From positions 124,001-188,000 of the IMG/VR virus record IMGVR_UViG_3300042891_000711: a DNA stretch of 64,000 nt. One strand, 5' to 3'. This document shows positions 29,830 to 46,836 of the stretch, one piece after another. Position numbers and translations under genes: made by a program. Below the pieces are notes generated by a model. It did no database searches and was not told the origin of the DNA. It saw only the letters and a program-made list of their open reading frames with translations. The first letter of the stretch is position 1, and every line of letters begins with the position of its first letter.

Positions 29830-32428
29830 CGTAATACTGTTTCAACCACGCCCATTCAAACGTCAGCATTAGTTTAGCGTAATCACCAGCAACATCATTA
29901 TAATATTCTAGTGCGTCCTGTGCACCTTGTAAACTCGATTCTGCACAGTTACCTTCAGCTGTTGTTAACCATCTGTCCAATCGATAACGACTTTCGATAC
30001 TGCCAGTGCGTTCGACATCATCTTTAAGTTTAATACACTCTCTAAACGCAGTACGCCATGTTAGCTCAGGTGTAGTATTATAATGCGCTGTAGCACTTAG
30101 TAGAGGCACTACAGCATGTGCTTTGCTCAATGTGAAGTCTAGTCCCGTGTCTGTTGTTTCGATTACTAGGCGTTTGTTATACGCAATTACACCCATGTGT
30201 CCGTACTCTAATCCGTTAACCGGATTCTTACTATGGAATATGTAGTGCTTAGGACCTTGTAAGTAGTCTGGTTGCCAATTCCAATCAAACGCTGTGTTAA
30301 CTTCTAATTTAGCAAACACAGCAAAGAACCAAGGTGTTGTACTAAGTTCAGCGGCGGCTTTGTAAGCGTTAGCTCGACCATCAACATTTTGCACACGTTT
30401 AACTGATCTACGTGTCAGGTCTACGGTACTAATTAAATGTTCATACCAACGTTCTGCATCTGGCTCACCATTGCTGATGTAGATAATATCCAATGCATGT
30501 TCATCGAACATAGGCATTTTAGTAATATAAGGATAATCGTATGCTTGTGTATTGATGGCAGATTTGGCGTCTCTAGGGGCTAAAATATAGCTGTTTCCGG
30601 CTGAAAAACCAACGATTTGACGGTCTTTTGCGTACCAAATGCTGGGATTATACTGTACACCACGATCATAGTTAAAAAAGTATGTAAACGGATGTTTAAA
30701 TTCATGCGACTTAATTGCCGCAATTAAATTGTCACCTTCATACTGTTGTCCGGGGATAGGCAAGCGGGGCACTCGTTGTTCTTCGCAGTAGTTAATAACA
30801 TTAAACCAATCCAACATCTCGAGCTCAACCATTTGCAGTTTAAAACTTTCTACGTGTATGTAGAATGTATCACCACGTGCTTGATTGGCACTAGGAAACA
30901 CGTGTATCATTTCTTTCTGCCAGGGTTCTGGTTGCCAGCTAAAGTCAAAGCGGGCATAATCACATAGACTGCTGATTATCCATACGTGTTCTGTTGAGGC
31001 AGTTGCCATAATACGTTTAAAGGTATCAAGGTAGTTGTCAACATATCGAGTCGATTTAATATCGGGGTGTTTCTTTTGTAGTTGCTCAAGTTGATCATTA
31101 TCATTGCCATGATCCACAAAGTAAATGTCATGCAGGTCGTCTGGTATTATAATACTTTGATCTTGTACAAAGTTTAGGTTTGGAAATTCTTCTAAGCTGT
31201 TAGCCCATGCGGATGTACGTTCAAATTCCCAACGATTAATTAAATAGGTATCACTCCACTTTTGATGTTGTGAACCAAATACATGTGTCATGTAACTTTG
31301 CCACGGTTCAGCATGCCATGCAAAGTTAAAGTCATCGTAGACGTTTTCACTACTGATAACCCAAAACTTACTGGTCTTTGCTCGTGCTACACAACGACGA
31401 ATTGTGTCAATCATTGAATTAACATAGCGTACTCGTTGTACCTGTGGATACTGTTCAACTAATTTTTCATAACGTGCGGCCGAACTAGCATTGCTCCGGT
31501 CAATAAAGAATATATCTAATACTTGTATCACCGGGTTATCGTGTTGTCCTATAGTAGGAATATCTCCAGCAAACTTAACTTCGGTTGCACCCGGCGCAGT
31601 ATAGGTCAGTCCGATACTAGATTGAAACTCTGAGCCAAAATGATAGATGTAGGGAGGATCCTGCGGATGCGGCACCCATCCAAAGTCTACAGTATCTGCA
31701 TTGACTTCTTCTGGTATAGTCCATAAGGTACGATCAGGTAAGGTACGTGCTACCACTACATCAATATATTTTTCTTGTGTAGCACCCGGTACGTGATATT
31801 CAGGACCGCCCACTGCATTCCACACTGTAGGGAATTTATATATATAGGGTTCTTCTGCTGGGTGTGGTACCCAACTAAAGTCAAATGATTCTTTGTCTAT
31901 ATTAGCAGGTACCTGCCAACGACTCATGTCACTGAGTGTGCGAGCAAAGAAATCATCTACAAACTTAACAGCAGTTGCACCAGGTACACGATATTCTGGA
32001 CCACCAATACGCTCCCATCCCCACTTAACAGGGAACTGATATACGTATGGTGGATCCAATGGATCAGGTGCCCATCTTTGATCAATACTGGCGGGATCTA
32101 TGTTATCAGGTACATGCCAATAGTCTAAATTAGGCAGACGATGTGTGTATGTTTCTTTATGGTAGTTGTGTACTTTATCTTGTACAGTATACTTGTTAGC
32201 AAAGTAGGTGCCACCATCCTGTTGCCATTGGTTTGCCCACGTATGTATTTGATGCTGTTCCCAAGGCACTGCACGGAAATTAAAATCAAATCCTGTGTAG
32301 TCATTCTGTCCATCTATGTACCAAAAGAATTTAGTGCGACTTAGTTCAGCCGCTTTGGCTAGTGTATCGGCCGGCAGTTCAAAAGGAAATAAGTTGGGCT
32401 TAGGGCCCTTATAGAATACATCAAACAT
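29810..32428 (-). CDS. Multidomain glycosyltransferase-like protein (tandem GT-A-like domains plus Trp/Pro repeats)
   Basis: Repeated DIFFID/DIYFVD/DIIYIS domains; C-terminal domain paralogous to 45940..46836; three ~62-aa W/P-rich repeats. Confidence 0.55.
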   Translation of the reverse strand: MFDVFYKGPKPNLFPFELPADTLAKAAELSRTKFFWYIDGQNDYTGFDFNFRAVPWEQHQIHTWANQWQQDGGTYFANKYTVQDKVHNYHKETYTHRLPNLDYWHVPDNIDPASIDQRWAPDPLDPPYVYQFPVKWGWERIGGPEYRVPGATAVKFVDDFFARTLSDMSRWQVPANIDKESFDFSWVPHPAEEPYIYKFPTVWNAVGGPEYHVPGATQEKYIDVVVARTLPDRTLWTIPEEVNADTVDFGWVPHPQDPPYIYHFGSEFQSSIGLTYTAPGATEVKFAGDIPTIGQHDNPVIQVLDIFFIDRSNASSAARYEKLVEQYPQVQRVRYVNSMIDTIRRCVARAKTSKFWVISSENVYDDFNFAWHAEPWQSYMTHVFGSQHQKWSDTYLINRWEFERTSAWANSLEEFPNLNFVQDQSIIIPDDLHDIYFVDHGNDNDQLEQLQKKHPDIKSTRYVDNYLDTFKRIMATASTEHVWIISSLCDYARFDFSWQPEPWQKEMIHVFPSANQARGDTFYIHVESFKLQMVELEMLDWFNVINYCEEQRVPRLPIPGQQYEGDNLIAAIKSHEFKHPFTYFFNYDRGVQYNPSIWYAKDRQIVGFSAGNSYILAPRDAKSAINTQAYDYPYITKMPMFDEHALDIIYISNGEPDAERWYEHLISTVDLTRRSVKRVQNVDGRANAYKAAAELSTTPWFFAVFAKLEVNTAFDWNWQPDYLQGPKHYIFHSKNPVNGLEYGHMGVIAYNKRLVIETTDTGLDFTLSKAHAVVPLLSATAHYNTTPELTWRTAFRECIKLKDDVERTGSIESRYRLDRWLTTAEGNCAESSLQGAQDALEYYNDVAGDYAKLMLTFEWAWLKQYYATKYTL
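31570..32119 (-). repeat. Three tandem ~62-aa protein repeats
   Basis: W.(V/I)P..(I/V)....D..W.P.P...PY.Y.F......G..Y..PGAT..K repeated three times. Confidence 0.85.
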
Positions 32429-32855
32429 CTAACTGTTCTACTTCCACTCCCGAAGCCTTAAGGAAATTGACTCCACTATCATCGCGATAACTAGTAGCGT
32501 AGTAAACTCGTTTGATACCACTTTGGTATATGAGCTTGGCACAATCCAAACAAGGACTATGAGTAACAAATAAGTCAGCATCAAGTCCAGACTCAGTGCT
32601 CCTGGCTAGTTTTGCAAGTGCGTTAGTTTCAGCATGTAGGACTTCCGGTTTAGTTTTAATCGTGCCATCGTCAAGTTCATACTCGCAGTTATTATCCCAA
32701 CCAGTAGGCATACCATTGTAGCCAATTGAAATAATTCTGTCGTCTTTAACTACTAGTGCACCAACTTTAAGTCTACGTGCTGTGCTTAGATCACTGTAGA
32801 GATGTGCAGCTCGCATGTGTGCTAGTTTATATTTTGTTTTCATTCTAGTATCCAA
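32421..32855 (-). CDS. dCMP deaminase
   Basis: KVGAL, GYNG, HAETNAL, SPCLDCAK Zn-binding motifs. Confidence 0.93.
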   Translation of the reverse strand: MDTRMKTKYKLAHMRAAHLYSDLSTARRLKVGALVVKDDRIISIGYNGMPTGWDNNCEYELDDGTIKTKPEVLHAETNALAKLARSTESGLDADLFVTHSPCLDCAKLIYQSGIKRVYYATSYRDDSGVNFLKASGVEVEQLDV

Positions 32856-33274
32856 ACTAAATCAGCCAAGGTCTTACTCCATTGATCAATATCATCAAAT
32901 GTAGTAATACGGAAATCATATTCTTCAATGGACAAAGGTTCAAACAATTGATTAGTATCTTCGTAACGACCAGACCGAATAGTATCCATCCAAACCACTA
33001 GATCAGCATCAAATATTTTTCTCAGTTCCCGTGTGGGACAGACAAAATCGCATATGGCAATTATATCTCGTTGCTCAATTGCAGTTGCGATATGTCGCAT
33101 GCGATGTGCTTGTCGTAGTCTACCTTCACTGGTAAAATCCCAATCGTTGGTGGCCTGTCGGACTTCGTCGGCATTAACCCACTCTACAGCAAAGTTATTG
33201 GCTATTTCTTCTGTTAACCGTTCAGCTAACGTAGTTTTACCTGAGCCGGGTAGGCCACAAATTAAGATTTTCAT
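32840..33274 (-). CDS. cysC: Adenylyl-sulfate (APS) kinase-like protein
   Basis: GLPGSGKTTLA P-loop, NADEVR, DFT.EGR.RQ, FVCP, FEP; start ATG 33274. Confidence 0.75.
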   Translation of the reverse strand: MKILICGLPGSGKTTLAERLTEEIANNFAVEWVNADEVRQATNDWDFTSEGRLRQAHRMRHIATAIEQRDIIAICDFVCPTRELRKIFDADLVVWMDTIRSGRYEDTNQLFEPLSIEEYDFRITTFDDIDQWSKTLADLVWILE

Positions 33275-33281
33275 ATTAGTT

Positions 33282-33310
33282 ATTATACAACCATTTTTAA
33301 TGTACGTCAA
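33282..33310 (-). promoter_or_regulatory. sigma70 promoter, probably leaderless cysC mRNA
   Basis: TTGACG-17 nt-TATAAT on - strand, ATG 7 nt downstream. Confidence 0.7.
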
Positions 33311-33352
33311 GTATTTAATATCATGTAGCTGCCCCAAATAATAAATACAAGC

Positions 33353-34594
33353 ATGAATGTACTAATTCTTACACCCGACAGAGTTGGGTCAACCCTGCTA
33401 CAAAGATTGCTTACCGTGTATATGTTAAGAAAAGGGTTTGATAAACCAGTAATTAACCTACATGAGTTAACCAACGGACTAGTACAATATTACAATACTA
33501 CCATAAATCAAACTGTTCTGGGTAAACCCGAAGGTCAAGACTGGGGATACCATCAATCCTTGTCCGAAGTTATTGAATTGCTATCTTCAACAGACCATTA
33601 TAAAACTAGTAGACTAGCACACTATCATATTGTTAATAGACAGGATTCTATTGCCGAACAATTAAAGTTTTATGATTATCTCAATAAGAATTTTTATATA
33701 ATCAGCTGTCGTAGAGAAAATCTATTGGAGCATGCACTAAGCTGGTCAATTAATGCGCATAGTAAAAAATTAAATGTATACAGTCCACACGAAAAGATTA
33801 ATTCATTTTATGATATCTATCGTAACGGTATAGAAGTTCAACGAGATACTATGTATGCTCATTTAAAAAAATATAAAGAATATATCGATTGGTCTGACAG
33901 ATATTTTAACATACAGTCACATTTTTATTATGAAAATGATGTGCCTAAGATTGAAGATTATATTTTAAATTTAGATTTTATGCAAGGGCACGCCAACAAC
34001 TCCTGGCAGGATATGTTTGGGCAAAGCTTCGTCGACTATAATACCTGTCACAAACTTATTCCAGATTTATTGTTGTCTAATAATGTTACTGCCGATACAA
34101 CAAAAATCAGTCGTCCACAGTGGGCGTGGAATTCTGAGTCGCTTAATGAATTAAATTGGAATACTGTTAAAGGGAAAGATTGGCCAGAGTACGATGATGT
34201 AACTGTTGAATCATTTAATAAACTGCCAGCACCTATACAATCAGAACTTACTGAATTTGGCTATAACCCAAACAAGTATTCAGTATCAGTTACTGCTGAT
34301 GTTTACAATTTTTTAAACCAGCATGTTGCACAGTATAAAGACACAGATGACCAACTGAACAAACTAGTACAAGATGGATTCTTAGTAACAGGCATTCCAA
34401 TTAAACTACAGTCGTTCAGTGAAAAGAAATCTATTGTTAGAAACTTTAACGAATGTGTCGATTGGTATAATGAGTGGACTGTGGATAATTCCTATGGAAA
34501 GAAATATTCTGCGGAAGACATAAGTCAATTATGCATCATTGAAGATACTCGATTGACATTGCCTTTAGTGACTGTTAGTAAATTACTTTCATAA
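33353..34594 (+). CDS. Sulfotransferase-like P-loop protein (Stf0-like), inverted relative to neighbours
   Basis: ILTPDRVGSTLL (5'-PSB-like), LHE, RRENLLEHALS (3'-PB-like), FYYE. Confidence 0.55.
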   Translation: MNVLILTPDRVGSTLLQRLLTVYMLRKGFDKPVINLHELTNGLVQYYNTTINQTVLGKPEGQDWGYHQSLSEVIELLSSTDHYKTSRLAHYHIVNRQDSIAEQLKFYDYLNKNFYIISCRRENLLEHALSWSINAHSKKLNVYSPHEKINSFYDIYRNGIEVQRDTMYAHLKKYKEYIDWSDRYFNIQSHFYYENDVPKIEDYILNLDFMQGHANNSWQDMFGQSFVDYNTCHKLIPDLLLSNNVTADTTKISRPQWAWNSESLNELNWNTVKGKDWPEYDDVTVESFNKLPAPIQSELTEFGYNPNKYSVSVTADVYNFLNQHVAQYKDTDDQLNKLVQDGFLVTGIPIKLQSFSEKKSIVRNFNECVDWYNEWTVDNSYGKKYSAEDISQLCIIEDTRLTLPLVTVSKLLS

Positions 34595-35423
34595 GGTCTG
34601 ACACAAAATTAGTTGCAGTAGCTTTGTCATAATGGTGACCATCTCTTGCTAGATCAACCTGTGTCAACTGAATAATATTATTACGAATTGCCGAATCGGT
34701 TAGATGTATGTACTCGTAGTAATCATTATAAAAATCATACGTACTTAACTCTTCTTTAATGTTCACAGGAAGGGAATCAAATTCTAGTTTTGTGCGAGGT
34801 GCAGTGGGCCATGTATCTCCACTAAGTTTTTTCCATTTAATATTGAAAAATTCTTCATTTTCTATACGGTACGCACCAGGAATCATTGAATGAATTAATT
34901 TAGTAGTGGTTACAGCGGTATTAACGGCATCTAAATTTTTATCAAAATTATGTAAATAAACTTTATTATCTAAATCAGTATATGCCAGGCGGCGATTCTC
35001 GTCAATCTTAGTGTCATCTGTGTCTTCAGCTCGTTCAACATAAGTCCACTGGATAATTATACATCGAGGAGTTATAGTTTCTAACAAGCGTAGTACTTTT
35101 CTTGCGATCCAATCATTGCTGGCGCCGTCCATACTAACATTAATACACCGAATGTTAGTTTTATTTTGTAATATGTTTACCCAAGTATGCTCTAATGGGC
35201 TACCCAATCCTACTGTAAAACTATCACCAAAGCACCATATTGCATCGGTTATGTTATCGGGCCATTCACTGTCTCTGAATCCTCGAGAATTGTAATTGTA
35301 TTCAATGGCATAAGGATAAGAATTAAAATGATGTTTATCCGTGCAATATTTCTCAGAATCTATACCAGATTCATTCCATACTTTATGTTGTCTGGTAGTT
35401 AATATAAAATCTGGTAGTATCAA
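34575..35423 (-). CDS. SGNH/GDSL-family hydrolase or acyltransferase
   Basis: YNSRGFRD, FGDSFTVG, GASND, ARDGHHY. Confidence 0.75.
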   Translation of the reverse strand: MILPDFILTTRQHKVWNESGIDSEKYCTDKHHFNSYPYAIEYNYNSRGFRDSEWPDNITDAIWCFGDSFTVGLGSPLEHTWVNILQNKTNIRCINVSMDGASNDWIARKVLRLLETITPRCIIIQWTYVERAEDTDDTKIDENRRLAYTDLDNKVYLHNFDKNLDAVNTAVTTTKLIHSMIPGAYRIENEEFFNIKWKKLSGDTWPTAPRTKLEFDSLPVNIKEELSTYDFYNDYYEYIHLTDSAIRNNIIQLTQVDLARDGHHYDKATATNFVSDLMKVIY

Positions 35424-36910
35424 GATAAAACTCGAATTCCGTATAACTGCTCAAAGCGGTCAGCATCTGCACGATCGTTAACCATCGGTTCACCACGTAC
35501 ATTTAAACTTGTATTAAGTAACATAGGACAACCTGTCCAAGTATACCACAAGCACAATAGTTCACGTATACCACTGCCATCTCTGGGCACAGTCTGTACA
35601 CGACTTGTACCATCTACATGTATTATAGCAGGAAATTCATCGGGTCGCAGGCACTTTGCAGTTGTTTGCATGTATCTGCTTGTGGCAAATCCGTTGGGCA
35701 TTTCAAAATACTCATCAACAAACTCCTCTAGTATTATAGGAGCGAATGGTCTAAACTTCTGTCTACGTTTAATTTGATTAACTGCATCTTTAATGTCAGG
35801 GCCACGTGGGTCGGCTAATAAACTACGATTGCCCAATGCTCTAGGGCCAAACTCTGCACGGCCGCTAGCAACGCCAACGATCTTATTGGTCATTAGCTCA
35901 GAGACAACATCGGTGACAGGATAACTGCCACTAATATTATGGCCAAGAAAAGCATTATTCCAATTAAGTTTACCCCCGTGTGCCAATGCCGCCGCTCCAA
36001 GGCTGCTACCAGCATCACCAGGATTAGGCATAATCCATATTTCATCAAAGTATTCTCCTAGATCTCTATTAGCACTGCAATTAAGAGCAACTCCGCCAGC
36101 ATATACTAAATTACTATTAGGTGCTAGCTTCTTTGCCTTGTACATAATATTATGTATCAATTGTTCTGTTAATGTCTGTGCCGCATTAGCAATTTCAAAA
36201 TCATTCCAACGAGCTCGCATGTCATTATCGGGTAGACCAATATGTAGATTGTGTTTTAATGTTAGATTAAACTCATGGTCAACTAACCAAGTTGACAGTT
36301 GATCACTTAGACGTGTGGTATTTTGTTTTGCCCAACCTGCCATACCCATCAAGATGTATTCTTCATCTAGTGGTTTAAGTCCAACTTCTTTAGTAAATGC
36401 ACTGTACATCAAGCCGATGCTGTGTGGATATAGTTGTCGCCATACTCGGGTGTATTCAGCACGGCCATTGACATACTTAGCTGACCATATGCTTATGGTG
36501 TCCCACTCGCCGATGGCATCGATTACCACAACTGTTGCGCTGTCAAACGGGCTAGTTTGAAAGCCGGCCGCTGCATGACTTAAATGATGATTGTATGTAT
36601 TAATCGGAGTAGAACTCAACCACGGAGCGACTTTGTGTATCATGTTGCGCACACTCCAGCCTTTAGTTAGTTCGCTGTACTGGCCAGCATAGAGTTGACG
36701 TGTCTTTTTAACCCAGGGTCTTTCGTAGTAGGCAATTAGATCAGGTTCGCCATGATTAAATATGCAATCTTTAAACAGTTCACTGTTTAAATTTGGATCG
36801 TGTTTAATCTTGCTGTAACGTTCAGCATGGCCCGCAAAGACAATGTCATCGCCTTTGATTAATGTAATTGCTGCGTCATGAAACCCAGCCGAGATGCCTA
36901 ATATGTTCAT
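35420..36910 (-). CDS. Carbamoyltransferase (NodU/CmcH/TobZ family)
   Basis: GISAGFHDAA, HHLSHAA, GGVALN, EFGPRALGNRS, RPFAP, HVDGTSRVQTV, LNTSLN. Confidence 0.95.
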   Translation of the reverse strand: MNILGISAGFHDAAITLIKGDDIVFAGHAERYSKIKHDPNLNSELFKDCIFNHGEPDLIAYYERPWVKKTRQLYAGQYSELTKGWSVRNMIHKVAPWLSSTPINTYNHHLSHAAAGFQTSPFDSATVVVIDAIGEWDTISIWSAKYVNGRAEYTRVWRQLYPHSIGLMYSAFTKEVGLKPLDEEYILMGMAGWAKQNTTRLSDQLSTWLVDHEFNLTLKHNLHIGLPDNDMRARWNDFEIANAAQTLTEQLIHNIMYKAKKLAPNSNLVYAGGVALNCSANRDLGEYFDEIWIMPNPGDAGSSLGAAALAHGGKLNWNNAFLGHNISGSYPVTDVVSELMTNKIVGVASGRAEFGPRALGNRSLLADPRGPDIKDAVNQIKRRQKFRPFAPIILEEFVDEYFEMPNGFATSRYMQTTAKCLRPDEFPAIIHVDGTSRVQTVPRDGSGIRELLCLWYTWTGCPMLLNTSLNVRGEPMVNDRADADRFEQLYGIRVLS

Positions 36911-37424
36911 TGATTACTTCCGCTATTCGTTGATGCCCTAGTTCCAGTGGATGTCCACCCGGTCCTTTTGGACAATCACCCATCCATTCTACTATGCCTT
37001 GGTTTGGCCAGCCTAGCCAACATGATAATCCTGTGTCAGTTGCTTGTTGTTGTATATCAAAGGTACTTACAAACACGTGTGGTATATTGTGTAAATAGGC
37101 ATCTAATAACTTAGTCTGTACTATAAATTTTTTATAAGCCCATGCAGTGTCCCAGTCAGCAAATACACTATTGACTACAGGACCATATTTTTTATAACTA
37201 GCCGATGTTAAATGTTTGCCAGGCAATTCAATACGGTTAGGACTAGTCCATGCTACGATTACATAATCAACTGAATGTGTGTCGACATAGTCAACTGTTG
37301 ATCTAAGTATGTAATCATTACTAGCACCAGGAACACTAATGTTTACAGTGCCACTGATTAAATCAGGCCATGCAACTTCGCTTTCTTCACCTGCGGTAAA
37401 ACTATCGCCATTGACTAAAATCAT
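36876..37424 (-). CDS. SGNH-family protein
   Basis: NGDSFTAG, GASNDYI, WTSPNR, GGHPLELGH. Confidence 0.75.
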   Translation of the reverse strand: MILVNGDSFTAGEESEVAWPDLISGTVNISVPGASNDYILRSTVDYVDTHSVDYVIVAWTSPNRIELPGKHLTSASYKKYGPVVNSVFADWDTAWAYKKFIVQTKLLDAYLHNIPHVFVSTFDIQQQATDTGLSCWLGWPNQGIVEWMGDCPKGPGGHPLELGHQRIAEVINEHIRHLGWVS

Positions 37425-37522
37425 TTATAGATAAAAGGATCGCGTTTACGTAATTCTTTTAATTTTTTACGATAGTTTATTTCTAATCGAATTCTACTGT
37501 ATAAATTCTTTAACCAGTTCAT
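37421..37522 (-). CDS. 33-aa basic peptide MNWLKNLYSRIRLEINYRKKLKELRKRDPFIYK (not in ORF track)
   Basis: Manual translation; GGAG 7 nt upstream of the ATG; TGA overlaps ATG of next gene (ATGA). Confidence 0.75.
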   Translation of the reverse strand: MNWLKNLYSRIRLEINYRKKLKELRKRDPFIYK

Positions 37523-38321
37523 GATAATTCTCCCGAATATATTTTGCAGCATCAATATGCGCAGGTTCCAACGGATGTGTTGTGCCTATAGGATATTTAA
37601 AGTCTCTTGCCCAGGTATAAAATCCTTGATTATTTGGGAAAGTAATCCAACGATCGAAGTCAATTTGATTGTATAATAATGCTATACTTTCATCATTCAT
37701 TAGATGCATACAGTTATTTAATAGTGCTTCATCCACCATTGAAAATATATAGGGTATCTTTCTTAACTGTAGATATTGCTGTAACATAATTATTTCTGTC
37801 AGCGAATTATAAGTTTCCCAATACTGTTCTTTTGATGCACCGATGTGCTTATAAAATGTTTTGGCAAATTCAGTTACGCCTGAACGTTTTGCTCGATTTA
37901 AATGTGTAACGTGATGTTCGAGTATATCAGGATCATCTGTTTTAAATTCGCGTTTAATATCTTCTATATCATCAATGATTGACCAAGAAGTAAGGTTGTA
38001 CCAATTACCCCAACGTTCTTCTGTATCATAATTAAATCTAAATTCGTATCTACCAGGAAAGGTCCATGTCACAATCACTAATCCAACGTCTTGTAATTTT
38101 TCACAGGCGTTCATCGTAGTCCGACGAATAGCACTGTTACTAAATCCGGGATATGCTGCACATTCATAGTGCATACCAAAGTTTTGGGCTAAGAGTGCCG
38201 GGTAAGTACTTAAACTGACTATCTGATGGGCAGGGTCAGGGTTAGTAGTATCTCTATGAGTAACACTATCGGTTAGTTCACTGCCATAAGTAAAACTATC
38301 ACCGCCTGATAGTAAAATCAT
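37494..38321 (-). CDS. SGNH-family protein
   Basis: GGDSFTYGSEL, GFSNSAI, WTFPGR, THPLEPAH. Confidence 0.75.
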   Translation of the reverse strand: MILLSGGDSFTYGSELTDSVTHRDTTNPDPAHQIVSLSTYPALLAQNFGMHYECAAYPGFSNSAIRRTTMNACEKLQDVGLVIVTWTFPGRYEFRFNYDTEERWGNWYNLTSWSIIDDIEDIKREFKTDDPDILEHHVTHLNRAKRSGVTEFAKTFYKHIGASKEQYWETYNSLTEIIMLQQYLQLRKIPYIFSMVDEALLNNCMHLMNDESIALLYNQIDFDRWITFPNNQGFYTWARDFKYPIGTTHPLEPAHIDAAKYIRENYHELVKEFIQ

Positions 38322-38322
38322 C

Positions 38323-39408
38323 TTAGGATATCCTTAGGATCTGTTGATCTCGATAGTCACTGTCTGACCAATCGTATGTATAAGTTACAGTAGCACTACT
38401 AGTTCGTATGCTGTGTACATTTAAGTGTAGGCCGAGCTGTGCCCATATAACGTTATAGTCTGTTGATCCAAAACTTCTAATTAAATCAACTTGTCCGACC
38501 TGTGGGTGACCAATTGTTAATGTTTTATCTTCTGGATCGAATCCATTGTCAATTAACCATGTTCTAAACGCTTCAAGACTTCGTATTTGCCAATGATATT
38601 TGCCCGGGTCATTGGCCCATTCAATATCAAAGTCTCCGGCGGCTTCTGTTTGCGAACGCAATGTTGTAGTAGTCAATTCATCTATTCTATGCCCTGCTGC
38701 GCCTTCATCTCGAAATACTTCATAATGATGTTTGCCCACTGCTTTGTTGACTCCAGCGAATACACCACCCAGTGGTCGGTTTATGCTGTTAATTCCAAAC
38801 AATTCAAAATCATCTGCATCTAATACAAATCTTGGTGCATTTAACCAACACATTAGCTGACTTGGTCTTCGCCATTCTGGTGCGTGCGCGGCTTTGCGCA
38901 TGCTCAACACCAGCGATTCGTATTCATGACATAATAAATTTAATTGTCGAATGTGCCATTTAGTTTGATTATCAGCACGGTTGTAATATTCTGTCATATG
39001 GCCGCTAGTGCCCTGCAGGTCTTCAAAATATCGATGCAATTGATTTAATTTATCATGTATAATCATACCACCTGGTAAATCATCACCTACCGGTCCGGGC
39101 ATTATTGTATTAGCCACTGTGAAATGATCATCAATTTGATAGCCAATATTAGCTTGATTAATTGCAGCAATTGACTGATTCATTTGATCAGTTATATACT
39201 CTGCATTACGTTCAGATTCGATAAAGCCGTGAAAACAATAATTCTTTTCTAAGTGATAGTTATTTTCTACTAGATGATTTAATGCTGATAACCATTTACG
39301 ACTAAGTGAGCTGTCAAATACATCAATGTATACAGTTAACAGTTCGTTGGTTTTATTGTTTTTTAAATCAATTTCAATTTGATCAAGCAATGTTGTTGTA
39401 CCATTCAT
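38323..39408 (-). CDS. Hypothetical protein in the radical SAM cluster
   Basis: 361 aa; LNQLH.YFE, LN.LCHEYE, VGKH His/Glu motifs suggest metal binding. Confidence 0.65.
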   Translation of the reverse strand: MNGTTTLLDQIEIDLKNNKTNELLTVYIDVFDSSLSRKWLSALNHLVENNYHLEKNYCFHGFIESERNAEYITDQMNQSIAAINQANIGYQIDDHFTVANTIMPGPVGDDLPGGMIIHDKLNQLHRYFEDLQGTSGHMTEYYNRADNQTKWHIRQLNLLCHEYESLVLSMRKAAHAPEWRRPSQLMCWLNAPRFVLDADDFELFGINSINRPLGGVFAGVNKAVGKHHYEVFRDEGAAGHRIDELTTTTLRSQTEAAGDFDIEWANDPGKYHWQIRSLEAFRTWLIDNGFDPEDKTLTIGHPQVGQVDLIRSFGSTDYNVIWAQLGLHLNVHSIRTSSATVTYTYDWSDSDYRDQQILRIS

Positions 39409-40672
39409 ATACAGCCGGTCTCTCTTTTAATATGTCTGCTAGCGTATAGGTATCTTTACGTATACTTTCTAATTGTAGCACACGAGCCTTACCTTTTGCA
39501 AGACTTACTTTATATGTATCTGGCCATTGCTCATCAAACGTTGGTCGTGATTTTAACTGCACAAGTATATCCTGCATAGCACCAGAAGTTTGTGGTATTA
39601 GTTCATCTAGCCAAGGATGTAGTAAGTCGCGTGGTAGTGCCAGCGGACTAAGGATGATGTCAGGGCTAAAGCTAAAAATAACTTTAGCCAAGACATCTAC
39701 GTTTTCTTTTTCAGCAAGCTGGGTAATGTTTGTGACTTCAAACATGCCGGGCAGTGTGAGAGTAAAGTCAATTCGCATTTGCCTTCTATGACTTGCTGTT
39801 CTAACTCCTTCACGGAAATTTGCAAGCCATGTATTGTAGTCAAGTCCTGTTCTAATATATTCTCCAATTCGACCAGTTCCGTCGAGGCTTGCACAGATTT
39901 GCCAGTCACGTAGCCCAGATAGAATATCCCTATAGAGATTGATGCCACGATAGTCGACGCGGCTAAGATTTGTATTGTATCTTGCGTAAACATTTTTACC
40001 ATATCCTAGTTCAACAATGCGTTGCATATAACGCCAATGTTGTTCATACATCAAGGGTTCACCACCCACCCAATATACTTCTTCTACTTGATGATCTTCA
40101 ACTGCTTGAGCAAACTCCTGTTCAATTTGACTATCTTGAAATTTTGATATTTCATTTCTTACTTCGGGCCGCATCCAATTGTTCTTTGGATTATGCCAGT
40201 TAATCATGTCATATTGTCTTTGTTCAGACTCCCATGCACTGCTTAACATATCACCACACATACGACATTTGAAATTGCATAAGTTACTAAAGCGATAATC
40301 CCAGCTTACAGGACGAAGTGTAGTAGTTCCGTCTGGTTGGGTATTCTCTAGTACTTGCAAATACTTATGGCCAAACAGACTATCAAAATAACTACGGTAA
40401 ATGCTAGTGTTAAGTAATTTGTCATTGCACACTTCGCACTCAGGTAGTGTTTCACCTGCCATCATACGGCGACGTACACTTTTCATGTGTTCGCTATTCC
40501 AATGTTCTTCAAGTGTAATAGGAATATATGTGCCAGTACCAGCTTTAGTATCTATGTACTGTTCAAAGTTCTGTGCGGGCTCGCGACTAGCACAGCACAT
40601 ACGTCGCTCAGTTTGCGGACTAAGATATGTATGTACCCACGGTGCTAGACAAAGTGTACTAGGCTTCGACAT
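39383..40672 (-). CDS. Twitch/SPASM-domain radical SAM protein
   Basis: N-terminal CLAPW...MCC...CEVC; NLCNFKCRMC; GGEPL; YNTN. Confidence 0.9.
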   Translation of the reverse strand: MSKPSTLCLAPWVHTYLSPQTERRMCCASREPAQNFEQYIDTKAGTGTYIPITLEEHWNSEHMKSVRRRMMAGETLPECEVCNDKLLNTSIYRSYFDSLFGHKYLQVLENTQPDGTTTLRPVSWDYRFSNLCNFKCRMCGDMLSSAWESEQRQYDMINWHNPKNNWMRPEVRNEISKFQDSQIEQEFAQAVEDHQVEEVYWVGGEPLMYEQHWRYMQRIVELGYGKNVYARYNTNLSRVDYRGINLYRDILSGLRDWQICASLDGTGRIGEYIRTGLDYNTWLANFREGVRTASHRRQMRIDFTLTLPGMFEVTNITQLAEKENVDVLAKVIFSFSPDIILSPLALPRDLLHPWLDELIPQTSGAMQDILVQLKSRPTFDEQWPDTYKVSLAKGKARVLQLESIRKDTYTLADILKERPAVYEWYNNIA

Positions 40673-43214
40673 AGCCCATTGCTACAGCAATCTCTCTATG
40701 AGTAGTTAACATACTCTGCTCACGGTATGCGTCTGTCTGTTGCATCTTATGTAGGAATTCTGTGCCATCACTACCACCACCATTTTCGATAAATTGAATT
40801 ATCTTATCAATTTCAACTCGATGCTTAACATTAAATGGATAAGCAGATAATCTATCAATTACTAACTTTTGTGCATCCGTTGTCATTCGATTGATACACA
40901 TAACACTCGGGTCATGCAACATATTAAAATGCACCATATCAAATTGTTGAGTATTAACCCAGTCACATAGCTCGGGCAGATAATAAACATTTTGTATGTT
41001 AACGGTCATGCAAACCTGTGTCTGAATTAAATTAGTTTTCATGGCATTAAATTTTATAACATTAGTTTTTACTTCTTCCCACACAGCACCATAGCGTTCG
41101 TATTCAAAACGTGCTTCGGTATTATCAATACTAACTGCAATTTCAACATTTCTAAATTTACTCCATAAGGCAACTTCTTCGTCGCTTGGGTATACTGTAC
41201 CGTTAGTATTATAGTGTATATCAATACGTTTACTATATCCATGCTCAACTGCATAGCGTAATAGTTTAAAATGCTCTTCGATTAGGAATGGTTCGCCGCC
41301 TGTGAATTCAAAGTACTTAATGTTTGGTAATAGTTCTTTTAAATTTTCCCAAAATACTTCGCTTTCCCTCGGCCAGGTTCCTTCTTGTAGGAACATATAT
41401 GCACCGTGTTGTTTACGGTCATATCCCTGCACGTCTTTATATTTTCTAGCTTCGTAATCAATTTCTTCTTTAGCCCATTTACTGCTACTCCATGATCCGC
41501 ATATACGACATTTAAGATTACAGATGTTGCCTAGTTTAAGATCAATGAACCAAAGTTGATCCGGTGTATCATTACGCCAATCAACTATTGGATAGAATTC
41601 TTTAAGTCTAATTCTGCTGTTGATACGTTTACTAACTATGCCCGCATCTTCTTCACTCCAGCAACGATTGCATGTACTAGGCTTTTCACCTCGACGGAAT
41701 TGTTGGCGCAGGTCCTGCATGTATTCACTATTGTAAATTTCAGCCAAGGAGCTTTCTCTAAGTTTATACGGAGTACCATCGGGTTTAGTAATTTCATCTT
41801 TAGCCAGACAACACGGACGGGCTGTGCCGACTGGACTTGCTTCAATACTGACCCACGGCAACATACAGATATTATCATGTGTCTTATTGATTCCCAAATG
41901 GTCTCTCAACTCTTGATATTCTGGAAACACTTCTTCGAATGTTTCTTTTCTAAACTCATCGGTTTGATCATTTATCTTAAAAAATTCTTTTAATAAATGG
42001 CTCTTATCGTCTTGATACATAAATGTGATAATAGCTCGATAACCCGATATAGCTCGTTGTAAATGATCCTGTGGGTCAAGCCAAGCAATATGTTCTTCAA
42101 CACGTTGCTTAATTCTATCTTTAAACTGAATTGGTAATACATCGATTCGATCACGTTCTGGACTTTGTAGAATGTTAACATTCCAATCCATTGCTTTAAT
42201 TAAGCCAAGTTCAACCCATTCTTTATGAAATTCAGTTAAATGCCAAGCATTAAGTATACTAACTGTACTGCTGACATAAAAGTCAACTTTAGGACAAATT
42301 TCAATCATTTTGCGTCGATTTTCTACTGTTTCTGCCCAGTCTGTGCCCTTGCGGATGTATTCTCCGCGAAGATATGAATCATCTAAACTAGCACCCACAC
42401 TTACTACATCAAACAGTTTCCAATATTCAAATACCATCTTATCTTTAAGACGTATGTGACTGAAGTTTGTGTTGTAGATTAACCTAACATGGAACATTTC
42501 ACGCTTAACCAGTTCTTCTAATATGCGATAATGTTCTTCCATGATTAATGGCTCGCCGCCGGCAAAGTAAATCTGTTCTAGATAGGGAATGTGTTCCTGC
42601 ATCTGTTCCCACATGTCATCTTTATTTTTACCTGCAAACATAATCTGCGGATGATTTAATTTACCGAATAGTTTAGTTTCTTCTGCAAACCAACTACTGC
42701 TGAATAAACTACCACAAGTACGGCAACTAAAGTTACATAGATTACTAAAACGTACATCATAGTAGCGTAGTTTAAAGTCATCTAAACTACCGTCGGCATT
42801 AGTTTTATCTGCTAAGGCAATATGATGTCCAAAGTTCTTATTTTGACTGTTGCGCATCGAAAAGAATCCGTTGTCTTCTTGTTCGTAACAACGTGTACAT
42901 TCTTTACTGGGTTTATCCTCTAACATATTTAGACGCATCTGTTTGTATGGGGTTCCATTCCATACTTCTGCCATGGTATTCTCTTTGAAGTTACCAATCG
43001 GCAAATGCATTTCACCTAAACAACATGGATATGCACGACCATCGGGAATTCCATGCATGTGCGTCCATGGTATCATACAGAAGTGCTTGCTTTCTATTAG
43101 TTTATATGTTTGATCTTCTGTTAACTCATCTTCATGTATATACACAGGTTTACGTGTATTGTAATTGTGATTTTTATGATGTACAGTTAATTTTTTGCTT
43201 GGCTCATCGCTCAT
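40659..43214 (-). CDS. Tandem double Twitch/SPASM radical SAM protein
   Basis: Two full modules: CMIPW..PCC/CNFSCRTC/GGEPL and CMLPW..PCC/CNLKCRIC/GGEPF. Confidence 0.9.
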   Translation of the reverse strand: MSDEPSKKLTVHHKNHNYNTRKPVYIHEDELTEDQTYKLIESKHFCMIPWTHMHGIPDGRAYPCCLGEMHLPIGNFKENTMAEVWNGTPYKQMRLNMLEDKPSKECTRCYEQEDNGFFSMRNSQNKNFGHHIALADKTNADGSLDDFKLRYYDVRFSNLCNFSCRTCGSLFSSSWFAEETKLFGKLNHPQIMFAGKNKDDMWEQMQEHIPYLEQIYFAGGEPLIMEEHYRILEELVKREMFHVRLIYNTNFSHIRLKDKMVFEYWKLFDVVSVGASLDDSYLRGEYIRKGTDWAETVENRRKMIEICPKVDFYVSSTVSILNAWHLTEFHKEWVELGLIKAMDWNVNILQSPERDRIDVLPIQFKDRIKQRVEEHIAWLDPQDHLQRAISGYRAIITFMYQDDKSHLLKEFFKINDQTDEFRKETFEEVFPEYQELRDHLGINKTHDNICMLPWVSIEASPVGTARPCCLAKDEITKPDGTPYKLRESSLAEIYNSEYMQDLRQQFRRGEKPSTCNRCWSEEDAGIVSKRINSRIRLKEFYPIVDWRNDTPDQLWFIDLKLGNICNLKCRICGSWSSSKWAKEEIDYEARKYKDVQGYDRKQHGAYMFLQEGTWPRESEVFWENLKELLPNIKYFEFTGGEPFLIEEHFKLLRYAVEHGYSKRIDIHYNTNGTVYPSDEEVALWSKFRNVEIAVSIDNTEARFEYERYGAVWEEVKTNVIKFNAMKTNLIQTQVCMTVNIQNVYYLPELCDWVNTQQFDMVHFNMLHDPSVMCINRMTTDAQKLVIDRLSAYPFNVKHRVEIDKIIQFIENGGGSDGTEFLHKMQQTDAYREQSMLTTHREIAVAMGYVEA

Positions 43215-44563
43215 AAGGTGTCGTACCAGTTAGTTAATTGTGTAAATGTATATTTAAAGTCTTTGCCTCGACGTTGGTCGTATTGCTGATAAAATTGTTT
43301 AAAATCGTTTTGTAATTTAGGCAAATCAAATGCTTCAGCATGCGGAATATCTACCATGGTCAAATATTCAATTAGTCGTTTAATGTGCTCAAATTCGTGC
43401 TCATGAAATACTGTATTCTTATTATTGTTAGCTAAAAAAGTTTCAAGTTCTAAACTATATTTTTTACGTAGTTCTAAGGGTAATATTAAAGGGCTTTGGA
43501 AACTTGGAAAGCGCAGAATATTTAGAGTAAACGACAATGAATCACGTCCGTATTTCTCTTTGAGTTTCATTATATTGTACAAAAATTCACTGAGGCTTGA
43601 TAAACACAGGGCATTGATTGTGCCCATGATATGCACGCCGCGCACCTGTTTGGATTCTAATAGAAATACTAAATTTTTGACCCATTGTTTCCATTCTAAT
43701 CCATCACGTATATACTCTGCTTGTGCGCCCATAGCTTCGTTACTGGTGTAGATATCAAGTTCGATACCCTGTGTGCTATCCAGCAAGCGTTCGAGTACAT
43801 CACGTTTAAAGCCAAGATTACTATTGATAGCTAGGCGTGTAGTACTGGCACCTTTATGTTCTTTAAACCAATCTATTAGACGCCATGTATAACCCGACAT
43901 CAAGGGTTCACCACCTGTGATGCGCAGTTCTTTTAACGTCTTGTGTAGGTCTGTTTCCCACCACTTAAAGAACGCTTCCACATAAGGATTAACTTCATTG
44001 AGTGTGTAAAGTTGACTACTATCATGAACATGAGTAAAGTGATTCCTACCGTCTGATACCAAGTTTGTGTAAGCACCATTTGTTTTAATATCTCTGACCC
44101 AGGCGCTACTAAAAGCAGGATTGCAGTAACTACAAGCAAATTGACAAGTACGGTCAAAAGAAATTTCCAATGTCTGCAGATCCACGTCTTGGTCCGCGGG
44201 TAAATTATATGCATAATCTAAATCCTCATCTTTATAAATTACAGTTTTGTACACACGGTCACTGACTGCCGCTGTGCCCATGTCTTCAATCTTCCAGCAG
44301 TATTCACAGCCCGCGGGTCGTTCACCTTGTTGCATCATACGACGTTCTTCTTTCTTACGTATGCTGTTGTGCAGGGCTTTGGGATTAGCAGCAATATCCT
44401 CAAGTGACACTTTGTGCGGTAGTGGATGATGACAGCTAGTAGTCATACCCGAACCCAACCATATAGTAGCATTGTACCACTTGGCCGCACAGAATGATTC
44501 TGACTTAATGTCAATTACTCTACGCTTGTATTCTAAGTCTGTTTCGTTATTAATTTTCGGCAT
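43211..44563 (-). CDS. Twitch-domain radical SAM protein
   Basis: CAAKW...SCHHP...CEYCW; CQFACSYC; TGGEPL. Confidence 0.9.
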   Translation of the reverse strand: MPKINNETDLEYKRRVIDIKSESFCAAKWYNATIWLGSGMTTSCHHPLPHKVSLEDIAANPKALHNSIRKKEERRMMQQGERPAGCEYCWKIEDMGTAAVSDRVYKTVIYKDEDLDYAYNLPADQDVDLQTLEISFDRTCQFACSYCNPAFSSAWVRDIKTNGAYTNLVSDGRNHFTHVHDSSQLYTLNEVNPYVEAFFKWWETDLHKTLKELRITGGEPLMSGYTWRLIDWFKEHKGASTTRLAINSNLGFKRDVLERLLDSTQGIELDIYTSNEAMGAQAEYIRDGLEWKQWVKNLVFLLESKQVRGVHIMGTINALCLSSLSEFLYNIMKLKEKYGRDSLSFTLNILRFPSFQSPLILPLELRKKYSLELETFLANNNKNTVFHEHEFEHIKRLIEYLTMVDIPHAEAFDLPKLQNDFKQFYQQYDQRRGKDFKYTFTQLTNWYDTL

Positions 44564-45947
44564 GATATTTGCATTCGTTCCAAAATTCTCGCATCTGTGG
44601 GAATATGTCTGTAAAATGTCCTATGTCAGTTTCGTATGCGCCGCGACGTTTATCGTATTCGCTAAAGAATCGATAGAAGTCCGCACGTTGTAGTGTAACA
44701 TACTTTGCATCTAACTTGCTACCATCTCGCATCCAAAGTAAGTTGCGTTCCATACGCTGTATTTCATAATCTTTAAAGCCAACAAAACTATCGTTGGGCA
44801 TTAGGTTAGCCCGCATAAATGCTATAACATCTTCTAATACTGTCTGGTAACTTGCTGGAAGTATCTGTAAACTTTGCCAAGTTGGACTACGTAGTAAAGG
44901 TGTATCAAACCAAACACGTTGATAAGTTTCGCTATACAATTCACGTTGATCTAATACAGTCTGCAATAATTGTTTTAGTCCTAAAATATTTAAATTACTC
45001 ATCGTGATGATATAGGTTAGGCTATTGCGATAAGGTATATGTGTAAGATAACGATGTACATATGAATTTACTCTATGTTGATTTAAACCACGACGAATAT
45101 ACTCCGACTGTCTGGTGTCACCCGAATCTAAACTAACATACTGCATAAAGTGTTCGATGCGTTCACCTTCGCATAGCTGTTTTACTTTGTCTAGATACTT
45201 GTCAAACAGTTCAGGCTCGACACTAAAGTTACTGGTTACATCAACGTGCAAGTCACTCTTAGGCAAGGCAAGTATGTAGTCAAACACACGATGCGTATTC
45301 TTATCCATAAGTGGTTCGCCACCTGTCATACGGAAGTGTTTTAGTTTAGGATATAGTTCAGGCCACCAAGACCAAAATGCATCTACATAAGGATTTTCTG
45401 CACGTACTGGAATTGGCTTACGTCGACCTTCAAAATGTTCAGGCGCATTGTGCGGAGTACTAGTTGGATATGCTCCCCATCGGTCAATATCTGTACCCCA
45501 CTTAGTACTGTACTGCGGACTGCAATAGCTACATGCCAAATTACAGCCATGACTGAAGTTTACTTCTACATAACTTGGCGTAACGTCCTGATCCCAAGGT
45601 GCATTAACTATAGTTTCGTAGTGTTCAGCAGCCCATGGTTCGCCACTGCGATAATGCCTATCGCTTAGTTGCTGGTTATCTTCTGCACTCCAACAGTAGC
45701 TGCATTCTGCCGGACGTGTTTGCTCTAGCATAAGTTTACGTTGCTGTTTCTTATAGTCAGTATTGTGTAAGGCACTGGGATTGAATAGTAATGGTGCGCT
45801 ATCAATTTCATGTAAAGGCGGATGATAACAACTGTTAGTTAAGCCCGTTGGTAAATGTAGACTTACCTGTTGCCACTTAGCCAAGCAGAGTGCCGGACCT
45901 AACTTGTCCTTCATTTCTTCTGCGGCAGACATGAAATTACTACTCAC
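44550..45947 (-). CDS. Twitch-domain radical SAM protein
   Basis: CLAKW...SCYHP...CSYCW; CNLACSYC; TGGEPL; probable GTG start 45947. Confidence 0.9.
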   Translation of the reverse strand: MSSNFMSAAEEMKDKLGPALCLAKWQQVSLHLPTGLTNSCYHPPLHEIDSAPLLFNPSALHNTDYKKQQRKLMLEQTRPAECSYCWSAEDNQQLSDRHYRSGEPWAAEHYETIVNAPWDQDVTPSYVEVNFSHGCNLACSYCSPQYSTKWGTDIDRWGAYPTSTPHNAPEHFEGRRKPIPVRAENPYVDAFWSWWPELYPKLKHFRMTGGEPLMDKNTHRVFDYILALPKSDLHVDVTSNFSVEPELFDKYLDKVKQLCEGERIEHFMQYVSLDSGDTRQSEYIRRGLNQHRVNSYVHRYLTHIPYRNSLTYIITMSNLNILGLKQLLQTVLDQRELYSETYQRVWFDTPLLRSPTWQSLQILPASYQTVLEDVIAFMRANLMPNDSFVGFKDYEIQRMERNLLWMRDGSKLDAKYVTLQRADFYRFFSEYDKRRGAYETDIGHFTDIFPQMREFWNECKYHAEN

Positions 45948-46836
45948 GTGACATTGGGCCTCGGTTTTTAAACACACTTTTGTAGTGATGTTTAAAGAAT
46001 CTACTTTGATCAGCTGTGAAATGTGGAGCAGGTAATCCTAGTTTTACGCTTAATGTATGTGACATTTCACTACATTCTTCTACTAGATTATATACTTTAT
46101 GTTGATGCCATATATTGTTTAGTGCATCGAAGTCCTGCACTTCTCTATAATCCCAATCTGTAATCATAGTCATGTATGTGCCTAGTTTAGCACCGTACAT
46201 GGCCCAGTCACCGTTCTCTACATCTATGCCCACATTGTGCCATATGCTTAGATGATCATAGTTACGTTCGTGTACACGTTTTTCAAATTCTTGTAGTGTA
46301 GGTTTGGCACCACGATCCAAACACATCTTAACACCTTCTCTAAAGCCAGCTCGCCATGCTTGATAAGGACTTTGATTTGGATATGTTGTGCTGTAGCAAT
46401 CATTCATTGCCCAATATCGTGGATCAAAACAAAACTCAACTGCGGTATCATCTGCACCATCGCTGGCTTCGTGTGTACGCATATTGTTTACAAAATCCTT
46501 GGTCCAGCAACTCATACCACCATTGCCGTACATAAGTCCGTTGATAATGTTACGTGCTTTCCAACGGAATACTACATCTCGATTAGTATCATCCAGTGTA
46601 AGCTGTAGGTTAAAGAACTCTGGATCGGGTAAGTTATCACCATCTATTAATACAAAGCGTTCAGTATCACTTGCGGCGGCCGCGGCTTTATGTGCAGCAT
46701 CACTGCCCTTGACACCGTCTACTCGTTTAGCCCACGGCACCATGTTTTGAATTTTAATCCAAAACTCTTCTTTTTTAGGTTCATCGTAACTTAGGTAGAT
46801 GCAGTCTAAATCTGCAATATCAACGATTTGTGTCAT
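45940..46836 (-). CDS. GT-A fold glycosyltransferase-like protein
   Basis: DCIYLSYDEP, RVDGVKG..AAH.AAA, LIDGD (DxD), YGNGG. Confidence 0.6.
   Translation of the reverse strand: MTQIVDIADLDCIYLSYDEPKKEEFWIKIQNMVPWAKRVDGVKGSDAAHKAAAAASDTERFVLIDGDNLPDPEFFNLQLTLDDTNRDVVFRWKARNIINGLMYGNGGMSCWTKDFVNNMRTHEASDGADDTAVEFCFDPRYWAMNDCYSTTYPNQSPYQAWRAGFREGVKMCLDRGAKPTLQEFEKRVHERNYDHLSIWHNVGIDVENGDWAMYGAKLGTYMTMITDWDYREVQDFDALNNIWHQHKVYNLVEECSEMSHTLSVKLGLPAPHFTADQSRFFKHHYKSVFKNRGPMSRE

Follow-up and report, generated by a model that had tools for sequence, protein, structure and literature searches.

We investigated a 64,000-nucleotide stretch of viral DNA, positions 124,001 to 188,000 of the IMG/VR record IMGVR_UViG_3300042891_000711 (218,902 bases; 62% complete by CheckV estimate), hereafter the window, and focused on a 33-residue microprotein gene on its minus strand at 37421–37522, stop included. 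The gene, recognized by its conserved family and by synonymous-codon variation, runs from an ATG at 37522 over 33 codons to a TGA at 37423–37421. A Shine-Dalgarno-like GGGAG read from the sequence (37530–37534, minus strand) lies 7 nt before this ATG, and the stop overlaps the start of the next gene (ATG at 37424–37422) in an ATGA at 37421–37424 of the same strand; the following gene (36876–37424, minus strand) has no visible Shine-Dalgarno sequence of its own, and the 5′ end of the peptide gene overlaps the final 29 nt of an upstream 275-residue gene (37494–38321). A first-pass annotation of this DNA had proposed a 33-residue open reading frame (ORF) here with a ribosome-binding site and ATGA coupling, and both the coordinates and the signals were confirmed on the minus strand. 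An alternative 44-residue frame with a TTG start exists; the residues ahead of the ATG are not conserved among homologues. The peptide contains 11 lysines or arginines in its 33 residues (net charge +8) and ends RKRDPFIYK. No membrane segment was found in it (best 15-residue Kyte-Doolittle mean of −0.27), and a clear amphipathic signal was not seen (helix hydrophobic moment 0.20–0.25).

The gene coupled to the peptide (36876–37424, minus strand) encodes a 182-residue SGNH-type protein of the DUF6071 kind, without the C-terminal tail described below, carrying an N-terminal NGDS block followed by GASND and GGHPLELGH. It scored 16.5 bits against DUF6071, under the cut-off; the signature residues S, G, N and H are invariant in an alignment of this protein with true DUF6071 proteins. 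Next on the same strand (35420–36910) lies a 496-residue O-carbamoyltransferase (CT) of the NodU/TobZ type, with a Kae1-like N-terminal and a YrdC-like C-terminal domain, assigned by family matches (Carbam_trans_N at E 3.4e-38, Carbam_trans_C at 1.3e-47, phrog_1601 at 2.9e-96); its metal and nucleotide motifs are invariant in the CT alignment. Downstream of the CT (34575–35423, minus strand) is a 282-residue, weakly GDSL-like protein (Lipase_GDSL_2 at 16.9 bits, under the cut-off), and in Verrucomicrobiota and Edaphobacter loci its homologues immediately precede the peptide.

Homology searches revealed that the peptide belongs to a widespread family. A word search with the 44-residue TTG-started frame of the window as query returned 272 clusters, nearly all of exactly 33 residues; among the proteins listed, 104 of 121 had exactly this length, and their sources name them "hypothetical protein". 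A profile search of 1.84 billion representative proteins gave 323 clusters at E ≤1e-3, nearly all between 30 and 60 residues. Across 63 distinct DNA versions of the 33-residue form, residues 18–33 were invariant or nearly so and each was encoded by 2–5 synonymous codons (five for R18 and L24, four for P29); the N-terminal half was also constrained (W3, I11, L13, E14). Similarly, an alignment of 53 diverse members showed D28, P29 and Y32 to be invariant and F30 to be present in more than 90%, and GC-rich actinomycete versions, whose start codons are uncertain, carried the same motif with quite different codons. Because synonymous codons change under invariant residues, selection acts on the protein and not on an RNA or DNA element. 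These results clearly indicate that the 33-codon ORF is a real, conserved gene, far beyond chance. The first-pass annotation had named a lack of conservation in syntenic loci as evidence against the gene; the frame proved to be conserved in hundreds of loci.

Scans of the window peptide (including matches at E ≤10) and of the 53 family members against Pfam, NCBIfam and PHROG gave no meaningful family; scattered matches (PriX, Cas5p and others; E 3e-4 to 0.3; 1–7 members each) were judged to be low-complexity basic-helix noise. A near-identity DNA search of the phage collection with 34500–40700 gave no match, and a literature search returned no description of DUF5989, of DUF6071, or of a CT, a jumbo phage and radical S-adenosylmethionine (SAM) enzymes together. 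The family is therefore one without description in Pfam, NCBIfam, PHROGs or the literature searched, and is of the same loosely known kind as the tiny uncharacterized ORFs found beside CT genes. Three longer proteins from short contigs probably arose as artefacts of gene calling or assembly and were set aside: P0184, which runs into the CT N-terminus in the manner of a frameshift; P0197, in which a GATase fragment is joined to the peptide; and P0145. Some phage loci hold two diverged copies of the peptide, each before a different gene (L033, 3272–3373 and 3891–3992; L087, 2006–2101 and 2993–3094; also L088 and L041), and one called protein of 75 residues (P0122) consists of two copies in one frame. 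In Glycomyces rutgersensis, a 30-residue gene was called in the Logan assembly (L202, 7259–7351) and left uncalled in the NCBI record of the species (L201), an illustration that whether members are annotated varies with the gene caller used.

We gathered 96 viral and 68 genome loci through the CT protein and iterated a hidden Markov model (HMM) of the peptide four times over all stop-to-stop frames of these CT loci. A same-strand peptide homologue was present in approximately 121 of 167 CT loci, with a few more seen by eye. The peptide-bearing loci span jumbo phages, Actinomycetota, Acidobacteriota, Pseudomonadota and Verrucomicrobiota; cellular carriers include Amycolatopsis, Actinosynnema, Nocardia, Micromonospora, Glycomyces, Actinomadura, Nonomuraea, Dactylosporangium, Agromyces, Edaphobacter and a 2.58-Mb gammaproteobacterial contig, and a homologue was also observed on a marine single-virus contig. 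In Ralstonia phage RsoM2USA (MG752970.1; 5014–5136 of the extracted locus L001), an unannotated 36-residue homologue ending RKQDPFIYK lies between coding sequences (CDS) 201 and 200, and the order of peptide, DUF6071 protein and CT is that of the window. RsoM2USA is a cultured phage and thus a usable experimental system.

A six-frame profile search of five whole bacterial genomes (5.7–10.5 Mb) gave exactly one match in each, at the CT locus, and the same profile family gave 0 matches in 400 other Actinomycetota genomes sampled. These results indicate that the profile is specific, and that the family is rare in cells and common in large aquatic phages. In 72 cases the CT came immediately after the peptide; in 30 the next gene was a DUF6071-like one that itself precedes the CT, and in 5 it was GDSL-like. 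A 4-nt ATGA overlap with the following gene occurred in 67 of 119 loci, with a spacing between −4 and +15 nt in 111 of the 119. Gene order is variable: in an Opitutales metagenome-assembled genome (MAG; L109) the CT gene comes first and the peptide gene follows it, the two overlapping in a TGATG. When the states free peptide, tail and none were mapped on a CT tree, they were strongly clustered, with 10 changes compared with a mean of 33.4 after shuffling, the tree being a quick one with 31 unsupported forks; its outgroup CTs and one Plantactinospora clade are without the peptide. The module thus accompanies one clade of NodU/TobZ (sugar-type) O-carbamoyltransferases in large phages and bacteria. 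The tie between the tiny protein and the CT module that the first-pass annotation had drawn was borne out, the peptide adjoining or lying near the CT in approximately 121 loci and matching once per bacterial genome. Many of the bacterial MAG loci (L100–L104, L162), with CTs 55–64% identical to that of the window, have phage-like neighbors and may be binned phage DNA.

Two further groups of short frames were observed at the margins of the family. One CT subclade, on the AT-rich MAG contigs L111, L116, L119, L123 and L124, was scored as having no peptide; in L116, L123 and L124, lysine-rich short frames at the CT start end in [D/E]-x-F-I-Y (for example KKKDFIY, KKEFIY and DDRFIY), and these are probably degenerate members without the proline. 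Upstream of a Kyanoviridae-type outgroup CT, L003 (5933–6004) and L158 (1186–1287) share a PLKVACRGV[L/F]GPPFF stretch without a start codon, which may be a conserved DNA or RNA element or a different tiny ORF.

We then compared the free peptide with the C-termini of the neighboring SGNH-type proteins. The RsoM2USA counterpart of the 182-residue window protein matches DUF6071 (PF19547) at E 2.4e-12, DUF6071 genes follow the CT genes of actinomycetes, and an AlphaFold2 model of a DUF6071 protein (predicted local distance difference test score, pLDDT, 86) matches GDSL esterases and TesA. DUF6071 proteins of Streptomyces, Antrihabitans, an Actinobacteria MAG and a Magnetococcales MAG (Pfam E 1e-29 to 1e-37) carry a basic C-terminal extension of approximately 60 residues ending DPYIYP, DPFIYP or DPFLYP. 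In a tally of 33 genome-contig loci with a DUF6071-like gene near the CT, a tail-less DUF6071 protein stood with a free peptide in 18, a tailed one without a free peptide in 8, and one with a variant tail (DRFIYP, NFIYT) without a free peptide in 3; tail and free peptide occurred together in 0. On one metagenome contig the DUF6071 gene is followed by the peptide with a 4-nt overlap. A GDSL-like protein of a Terrimicrobiaceae MAG (L112) has the tail in frame, and its close relative (L113) has the two in separate frames, which may reflect a real fusion or a MAG frameshift.

The mutual exclusion of free and tailed forms identifies the 33-residue gene as a split-off version of the enzyme tail, and these results show that the free peptide and the DUF6071 tail are interchangeable. 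We describe the module by three properties: a short basic segment with D-P-(F/Y/H)-(I/L/M)-Y placed 0–3 residues from the C-terminus, a same-strand neighbor of the CT clade that is direct or reached through SGNH-type genes, and free and fused forms that exclude each other within a locus. The window presents all of these, its peptide having the segment and the ending, its CT lying on the same strand, and its DUF6071-like protein being tail-less.

The arrangement suggests a docking function, which we formulate as follows. A basic helix, with D-P-(F/Y)-(I/L)-Y after it as the C-terminal or nearly C-terminal residues, travels with one CT clade; in some bacteria this module is the flexible C-terminal tail of the neighboring SGNH-fold DUF6071 protein, and in phages and many other bacteria it has been split off as a tiny gene translationally coupled to the following gene. 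The DPF(I/L)Y end would dock on the CT, the peptide would stabilize or activate the CT or couple it to the SGNH partner, and the fused form would tether the SGNH enzyme to the CT. Free peptides, DUF6071 tails and DUF5989 proteins (a second kind of tiny protein, discussed below) all have the CT in common, and it is therefore favored as the docking partner. We consider it somewhat better than an even chance that the peptide is a small docking/adaptor or accessory subunit that binds and works with the CT.

A complex prediction, a check that the first-pass annotation had suggested, was positive for the CT relative to controls and reached the mark termed "weak support". With the window CT and peptide, the median interaction prediction score from aligned errors (ipSAE) was 0.57 (runs 0.57, 0.67 and 0.17), whereas the best control gave 0.00; among 80 solved complexes 58 attained this mark, as did 2 of 110 mismatched pairs, only 7 of the 80 and both passing mismatches reaching it at an ipSAE of 0.60 or below, and, with our own CT and peptide alignments in use, these counts hold only roughly. 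The runs agreed in at least 95% of contacts, with a partner pLDDT of at least 66.

Several observations weigh against docking on the CT. The Plantactinospora CT subclade and a few phage loci manage without the peptide, and a few peptide copies precede other genes, namely radical SAM genes (L203, L097) and uncharacterized genes (L204, L041). The complex score did not rise above "weak support". In the window, the gene right after that of the peptide is the DUF6071-like one and not the CT, and by Rosetta-stone logic DUF6071 is just as good a candidate for the partner. Furthermore, the effect of binding (activation, tethering or other) is purely inferred.

DUF6071 in place of the CT is a serious rival. 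The true partner would be the SGNH-fold DUF6071 (or GDSL-like) enzyme, completed or regulated by the peptide, for example through a lid or a membrane- or substrate-binding tail, and linkage to the CT would merely mirror a shared pathway. Fusion of the peptide to DUF6071 in 8–11 bacterial loci and to the GDSL-like protein in L112 is what this predicts, as is the DUF6071-like gene immediately after the peptide in the window, in RsoM2USA and in the 30 loci counted above. However, in 53 viral and 11 genome-contig loci the peptide accompanies a CT and a DUF6071-like gene is absent from the surrounding 4 kb, the 72 loci show direct coupling of peptide and CT, and DUF5989, with the same PFIY end, is also linked to CTs. 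In an AlphaFold2 model of the fused protein, moreover, the tail was disordered (pLDDT <50) and off the SGNH core (pLDDT ~90 or higher); although the tail alignment was shallow (11 rows), the predicted disorder suggests that the tail does not pack on its own enzyme, a weak argument against intramolecular docking. We regard a DUF6071 partner as unlikely, while keeping it in serious consideration.

The coupling to the following gene raises the question of a cis-acting leader or arrest peptide, in which the nascent chain or its translation would control the downstream gene by termination-reinitiation. The peptide gene is usually upstream, the ATGA overlap recurs in the 67 of 119 loci, the peptide has its own Shine-Dalgarno sequence where the following gene has none visible, and the last ~17 residues, which are invariant, have a length fitting the ribosomal exit tunnel. 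Against this, the same sequence forms the C-terminal tail of enzymes of 290–330 residues in the 8–11 loci, L109 has the peptide after the CT, the constraint extends to the N-terminal half, and the complex prediction was positive against controls. We thus consider a leader function very improbable; translational coupling is probably real, but does not account for the sequence conservation.

The invariant tyrosine invites a different reading of the DPF(I/L)Y tail, by analogy with known chemistry, as a swinging carbamoyl carrier or substrate tail. The CT would carbamoylate the invariant tyrosine (or the following lysine), and the SGNH enzyme would pass the group to a final acceptor, the aryl carbamate on the tyrosine being relayed through the DUF6071 serine. 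Y32 is invariant in the 53 diverse members, and the tail is flexible and attached to an enzyme of the serine-hydrolase fold. Furthermore, the YrdC/Kae1-type family of the CT includes HypF, which acts on a protein C-terminal residue, carbamoylating the C-terminal cysteine of HypE (PMC6022934). The characterized members of the CT family, on the other hand, act on small-molecule hydroxyls, and simple docking motifs, too, typically contain aromatic residues. The actinomycete loci, moreover, include glycosyltransferases, a cyclase resembling 3-dehydroquinate (DHQ) synthase, a DegT aminotransferase, epimerases and an aminoglycoside phosphotransferase (APH), giving them the look of sugar/cyclitol pathways with an obvious small-molecule CT substrate. 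A carrier role is therefore improbable in our estimation; if true, it would amount to a carbamoyl relay carried on a protein and to a post-translational modification of a new kind, and the 33-residue phage peptide would be its minimal free carrier.

Upstream of the peptide, the window continues on the minus strand with two proteins without family matches, the 275-residue protein (37494–38321) that overlaps the peptide start and a 361-residue protein (38323–39408). A homologue of the former is the upstream neighbor of the peptide in 24 of 106 loci, and homologues of the latter are the commonest gene upstream of the peptide in phage loci (48 of 106). The same operon-like run then contains four consecutive N-terminal-twitch radical SAM genes of 429, 851, 450 and 475 residues (39383–45977, minus strand), with matches to NF033640 at E 2.7e-86, 8.5e-216 and 1.9e-87, and to Radical_SAM for the 475-residue protein. 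The 851-residue protein is a tandem double, so that, with the 475-residue paralogue included, one phage gene run holds five radical SAM domains. The CT, SGNH and radical SAM neighbors named in the first-pass annotation were all recovered on the strand of the peptide (34575–45977).

That annotation had also offered the peptide as a substrate of the SPASM/Twitch enzymes, similar to a ribosomally synthesized and post-translationally modified peptide (RiPP), and this proposal was not supported: actinomycete loci with no radical SAM gene in the surrounding 10 kb keep the invariant C-terminus. A precursor of a RiPP or cofactor, acted on by the adjacent twitch/SPASM enzymes, would fit the phage loci, where the gene run includes at least four radical SAM genes, and conserved C-terminal tyrosines are found in cofactor-type precursors such as PqqA and MftA. 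In L203 (1864–1965) and L097 (1992–2081) a peptide copy stands directly before a twitch radical SAM gene, and no other observation keeps a link to radical SAM enzymes alive. However, no radical SAM homologue was found within 4–10 kb of the peptide in the actinomycete, Acidobacteriota and Verrucomicrobiota loci, and the peptide is fused to SGNH enzymes in 8–11 bacterial loci. Conservation is highest at the C-terminus (the would-be core) and lowest at the N-terminus (the would-be leader), the reverse of typical RiPPs, and neither a precursor match in Pfam or NCBIfam nor an NCBIfam RiPP precursor or maturase equivalog at cut-off was obtained. Of the explanations considered, we hold this one to be the least probable.

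Elsewhere on the minus strand of the window, a dCMP deaminase (phrog_174, E 3.3e-55) and a P-loop kinase (phrog_10255, E 9.8e-34) occupy 32421–33337, separated from the CT module by a 413-residue plus-strand gene; the chemistry to which the CT module belongs might be that of nucleotide or DNA modification instead of that of glycans. A 2891-residue ORF (55296–63971, minus strand) and a 485-residue, tail-fibre-like protein with a Peptidase_G2 intramolecular-chaperone domain (50093–51550, minus strand) lie downstream of the biosynthetic run and represent the structural gene set of a very large phage.

The first-pass annotation further stated that CT loci often carry a tiny DUF5989 protein with a similar end; DUF5989 (PF19451) proteins are indeed encoded next to CT genes and end APFIYTLF, but the peptide is not a member of this family. 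With the DUF5989 HMM (27-bit gathering score), the window peptide gave no match at E 10 and none of the 53 members matched at E ≤1; no DUF5989 protein was found in the whole virus record of the window. Alignment of the family with 30 DUF5989 proteins by hhalign (local and global) covered only the 5 columns of the PFIY motif (probability 23%, P 9e-4), and homology is therefore not claimed. A CT was present within 1.5 kb in 29 of 30 DUF5989 loci, the DUF5989 stop often lying 12 nt before the CT start, and DUF5989 occurred in 60 of 301 Pseudomonadota genomes. The Magnetococcales genome DCbin4 carries both systems, each with its own CT: a DUF5989 gene 12 nt upstream of one CT (L168, 1333–1650), and a DUF6071 gene with a DPFIYP tail 25 nt upstream of a second, which belongs to the clade of the window CT (L117, 3010–3972).

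A divergent homologue of the DUF5989/SxtK type that lost its membrane helix would be tiny, adjoin CT genes and end PF(I/V)Y, as both kinds do; the N-terminal pattern of aromatic and basic residues is loosely similar by eye, and DCbin4 holds both kinds, each with its own CT. Yet the alignment extends over 5 columns at a probability of 23%, 0 of 53 members match PF19451 at E ≤1, the peptide has no hydrophobic segment, and the associated CTs belong to different clades. Common descent thus appears highly unlikely, and the likeness, as far as the sequences can be compared, is one of motif and context, not of membership.

Tiny genes of this kind are routinely missed, as the unannotated homologues in RsoM2USA and in RefSeq actinomycetes demonstrate. 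The family is nevertheless among the most strongly conserved genes of a cluster common to hundreds of large aquatic phage contigs. In bacteria, it marks a whole O-carbamoyltransferase clade, some of it in clusters resembling those of sugar/cyclitol natural products. If the peptide is a required CT partner, heterologous CT expression, for natural-product tailoring or in studies of phage auxiliary genes, may fail without it. Furthermore, the free-versus-fused pattern provides a directly testable functional hypothesis for DUF6071 and, by analogy, for DUF5989/SxtK, both of which have stood uncharacterized beside carbamoyltransferase genes since the saxitoxin cluster was described.

Comparison with known systems places the peptide, as a putative docking/adaptor subunit, next to four of them. 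The DUF6071 tail shares with it the basic stretch, the DP(F/Y)(I/L)Y end and the adjoining CT clade; the tail differs in being covalently attached to an enzyme of ~230 residues, in ending Y-P instead of Y-K, and in being R-rich and less helical-looking, and the Pfam DUF6071 model ends before it. DUF5989, which we take to be the SxtK type of the saxitoxin cluster, is likewise very small (49 residues compared with 33), directly beside a CT, uncharacterized in function and equipped with a C-terminal P-F-I-Y; unlike the soluble peptide of charge +8 ending DPFIYK, it has a hydrophobic membrane helix (LLPILI...LLGGLIV) and ends PFIYTLF. In the saxitoxin cluster itself, sxtJ and sxtK are uncharacterized short ORFs beside sxtI (PMC2885083).

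In HypE/HypF (PMC6022934), a YrdC/Kae1-type carbamoyltransferase engages the flexible C-terminus of its partner, as the CT would engage the peptide. HypE differs in that its acceptor is a C-terminal cysteine on an ATP-dependent enzyme of ~330 residues, whereas the conserved residue of the peptide is a tyrosine, and the window CT differs from HypF in having the O-carbamoyltransferase domain order. MbtH-like proteins, small obligatory partners of the adenylation domains of nonribosomal peptide synthetases, are folded proteins of ~70 residues. They resemble the peptide in being tiny, cluster-encoded, sometimes fused and sometimes separate, and presumed to stabilize or activate an enzyme; no relation in sequence or fold connects the two, the peptide being a single basic helix with a short hydrophobic end.

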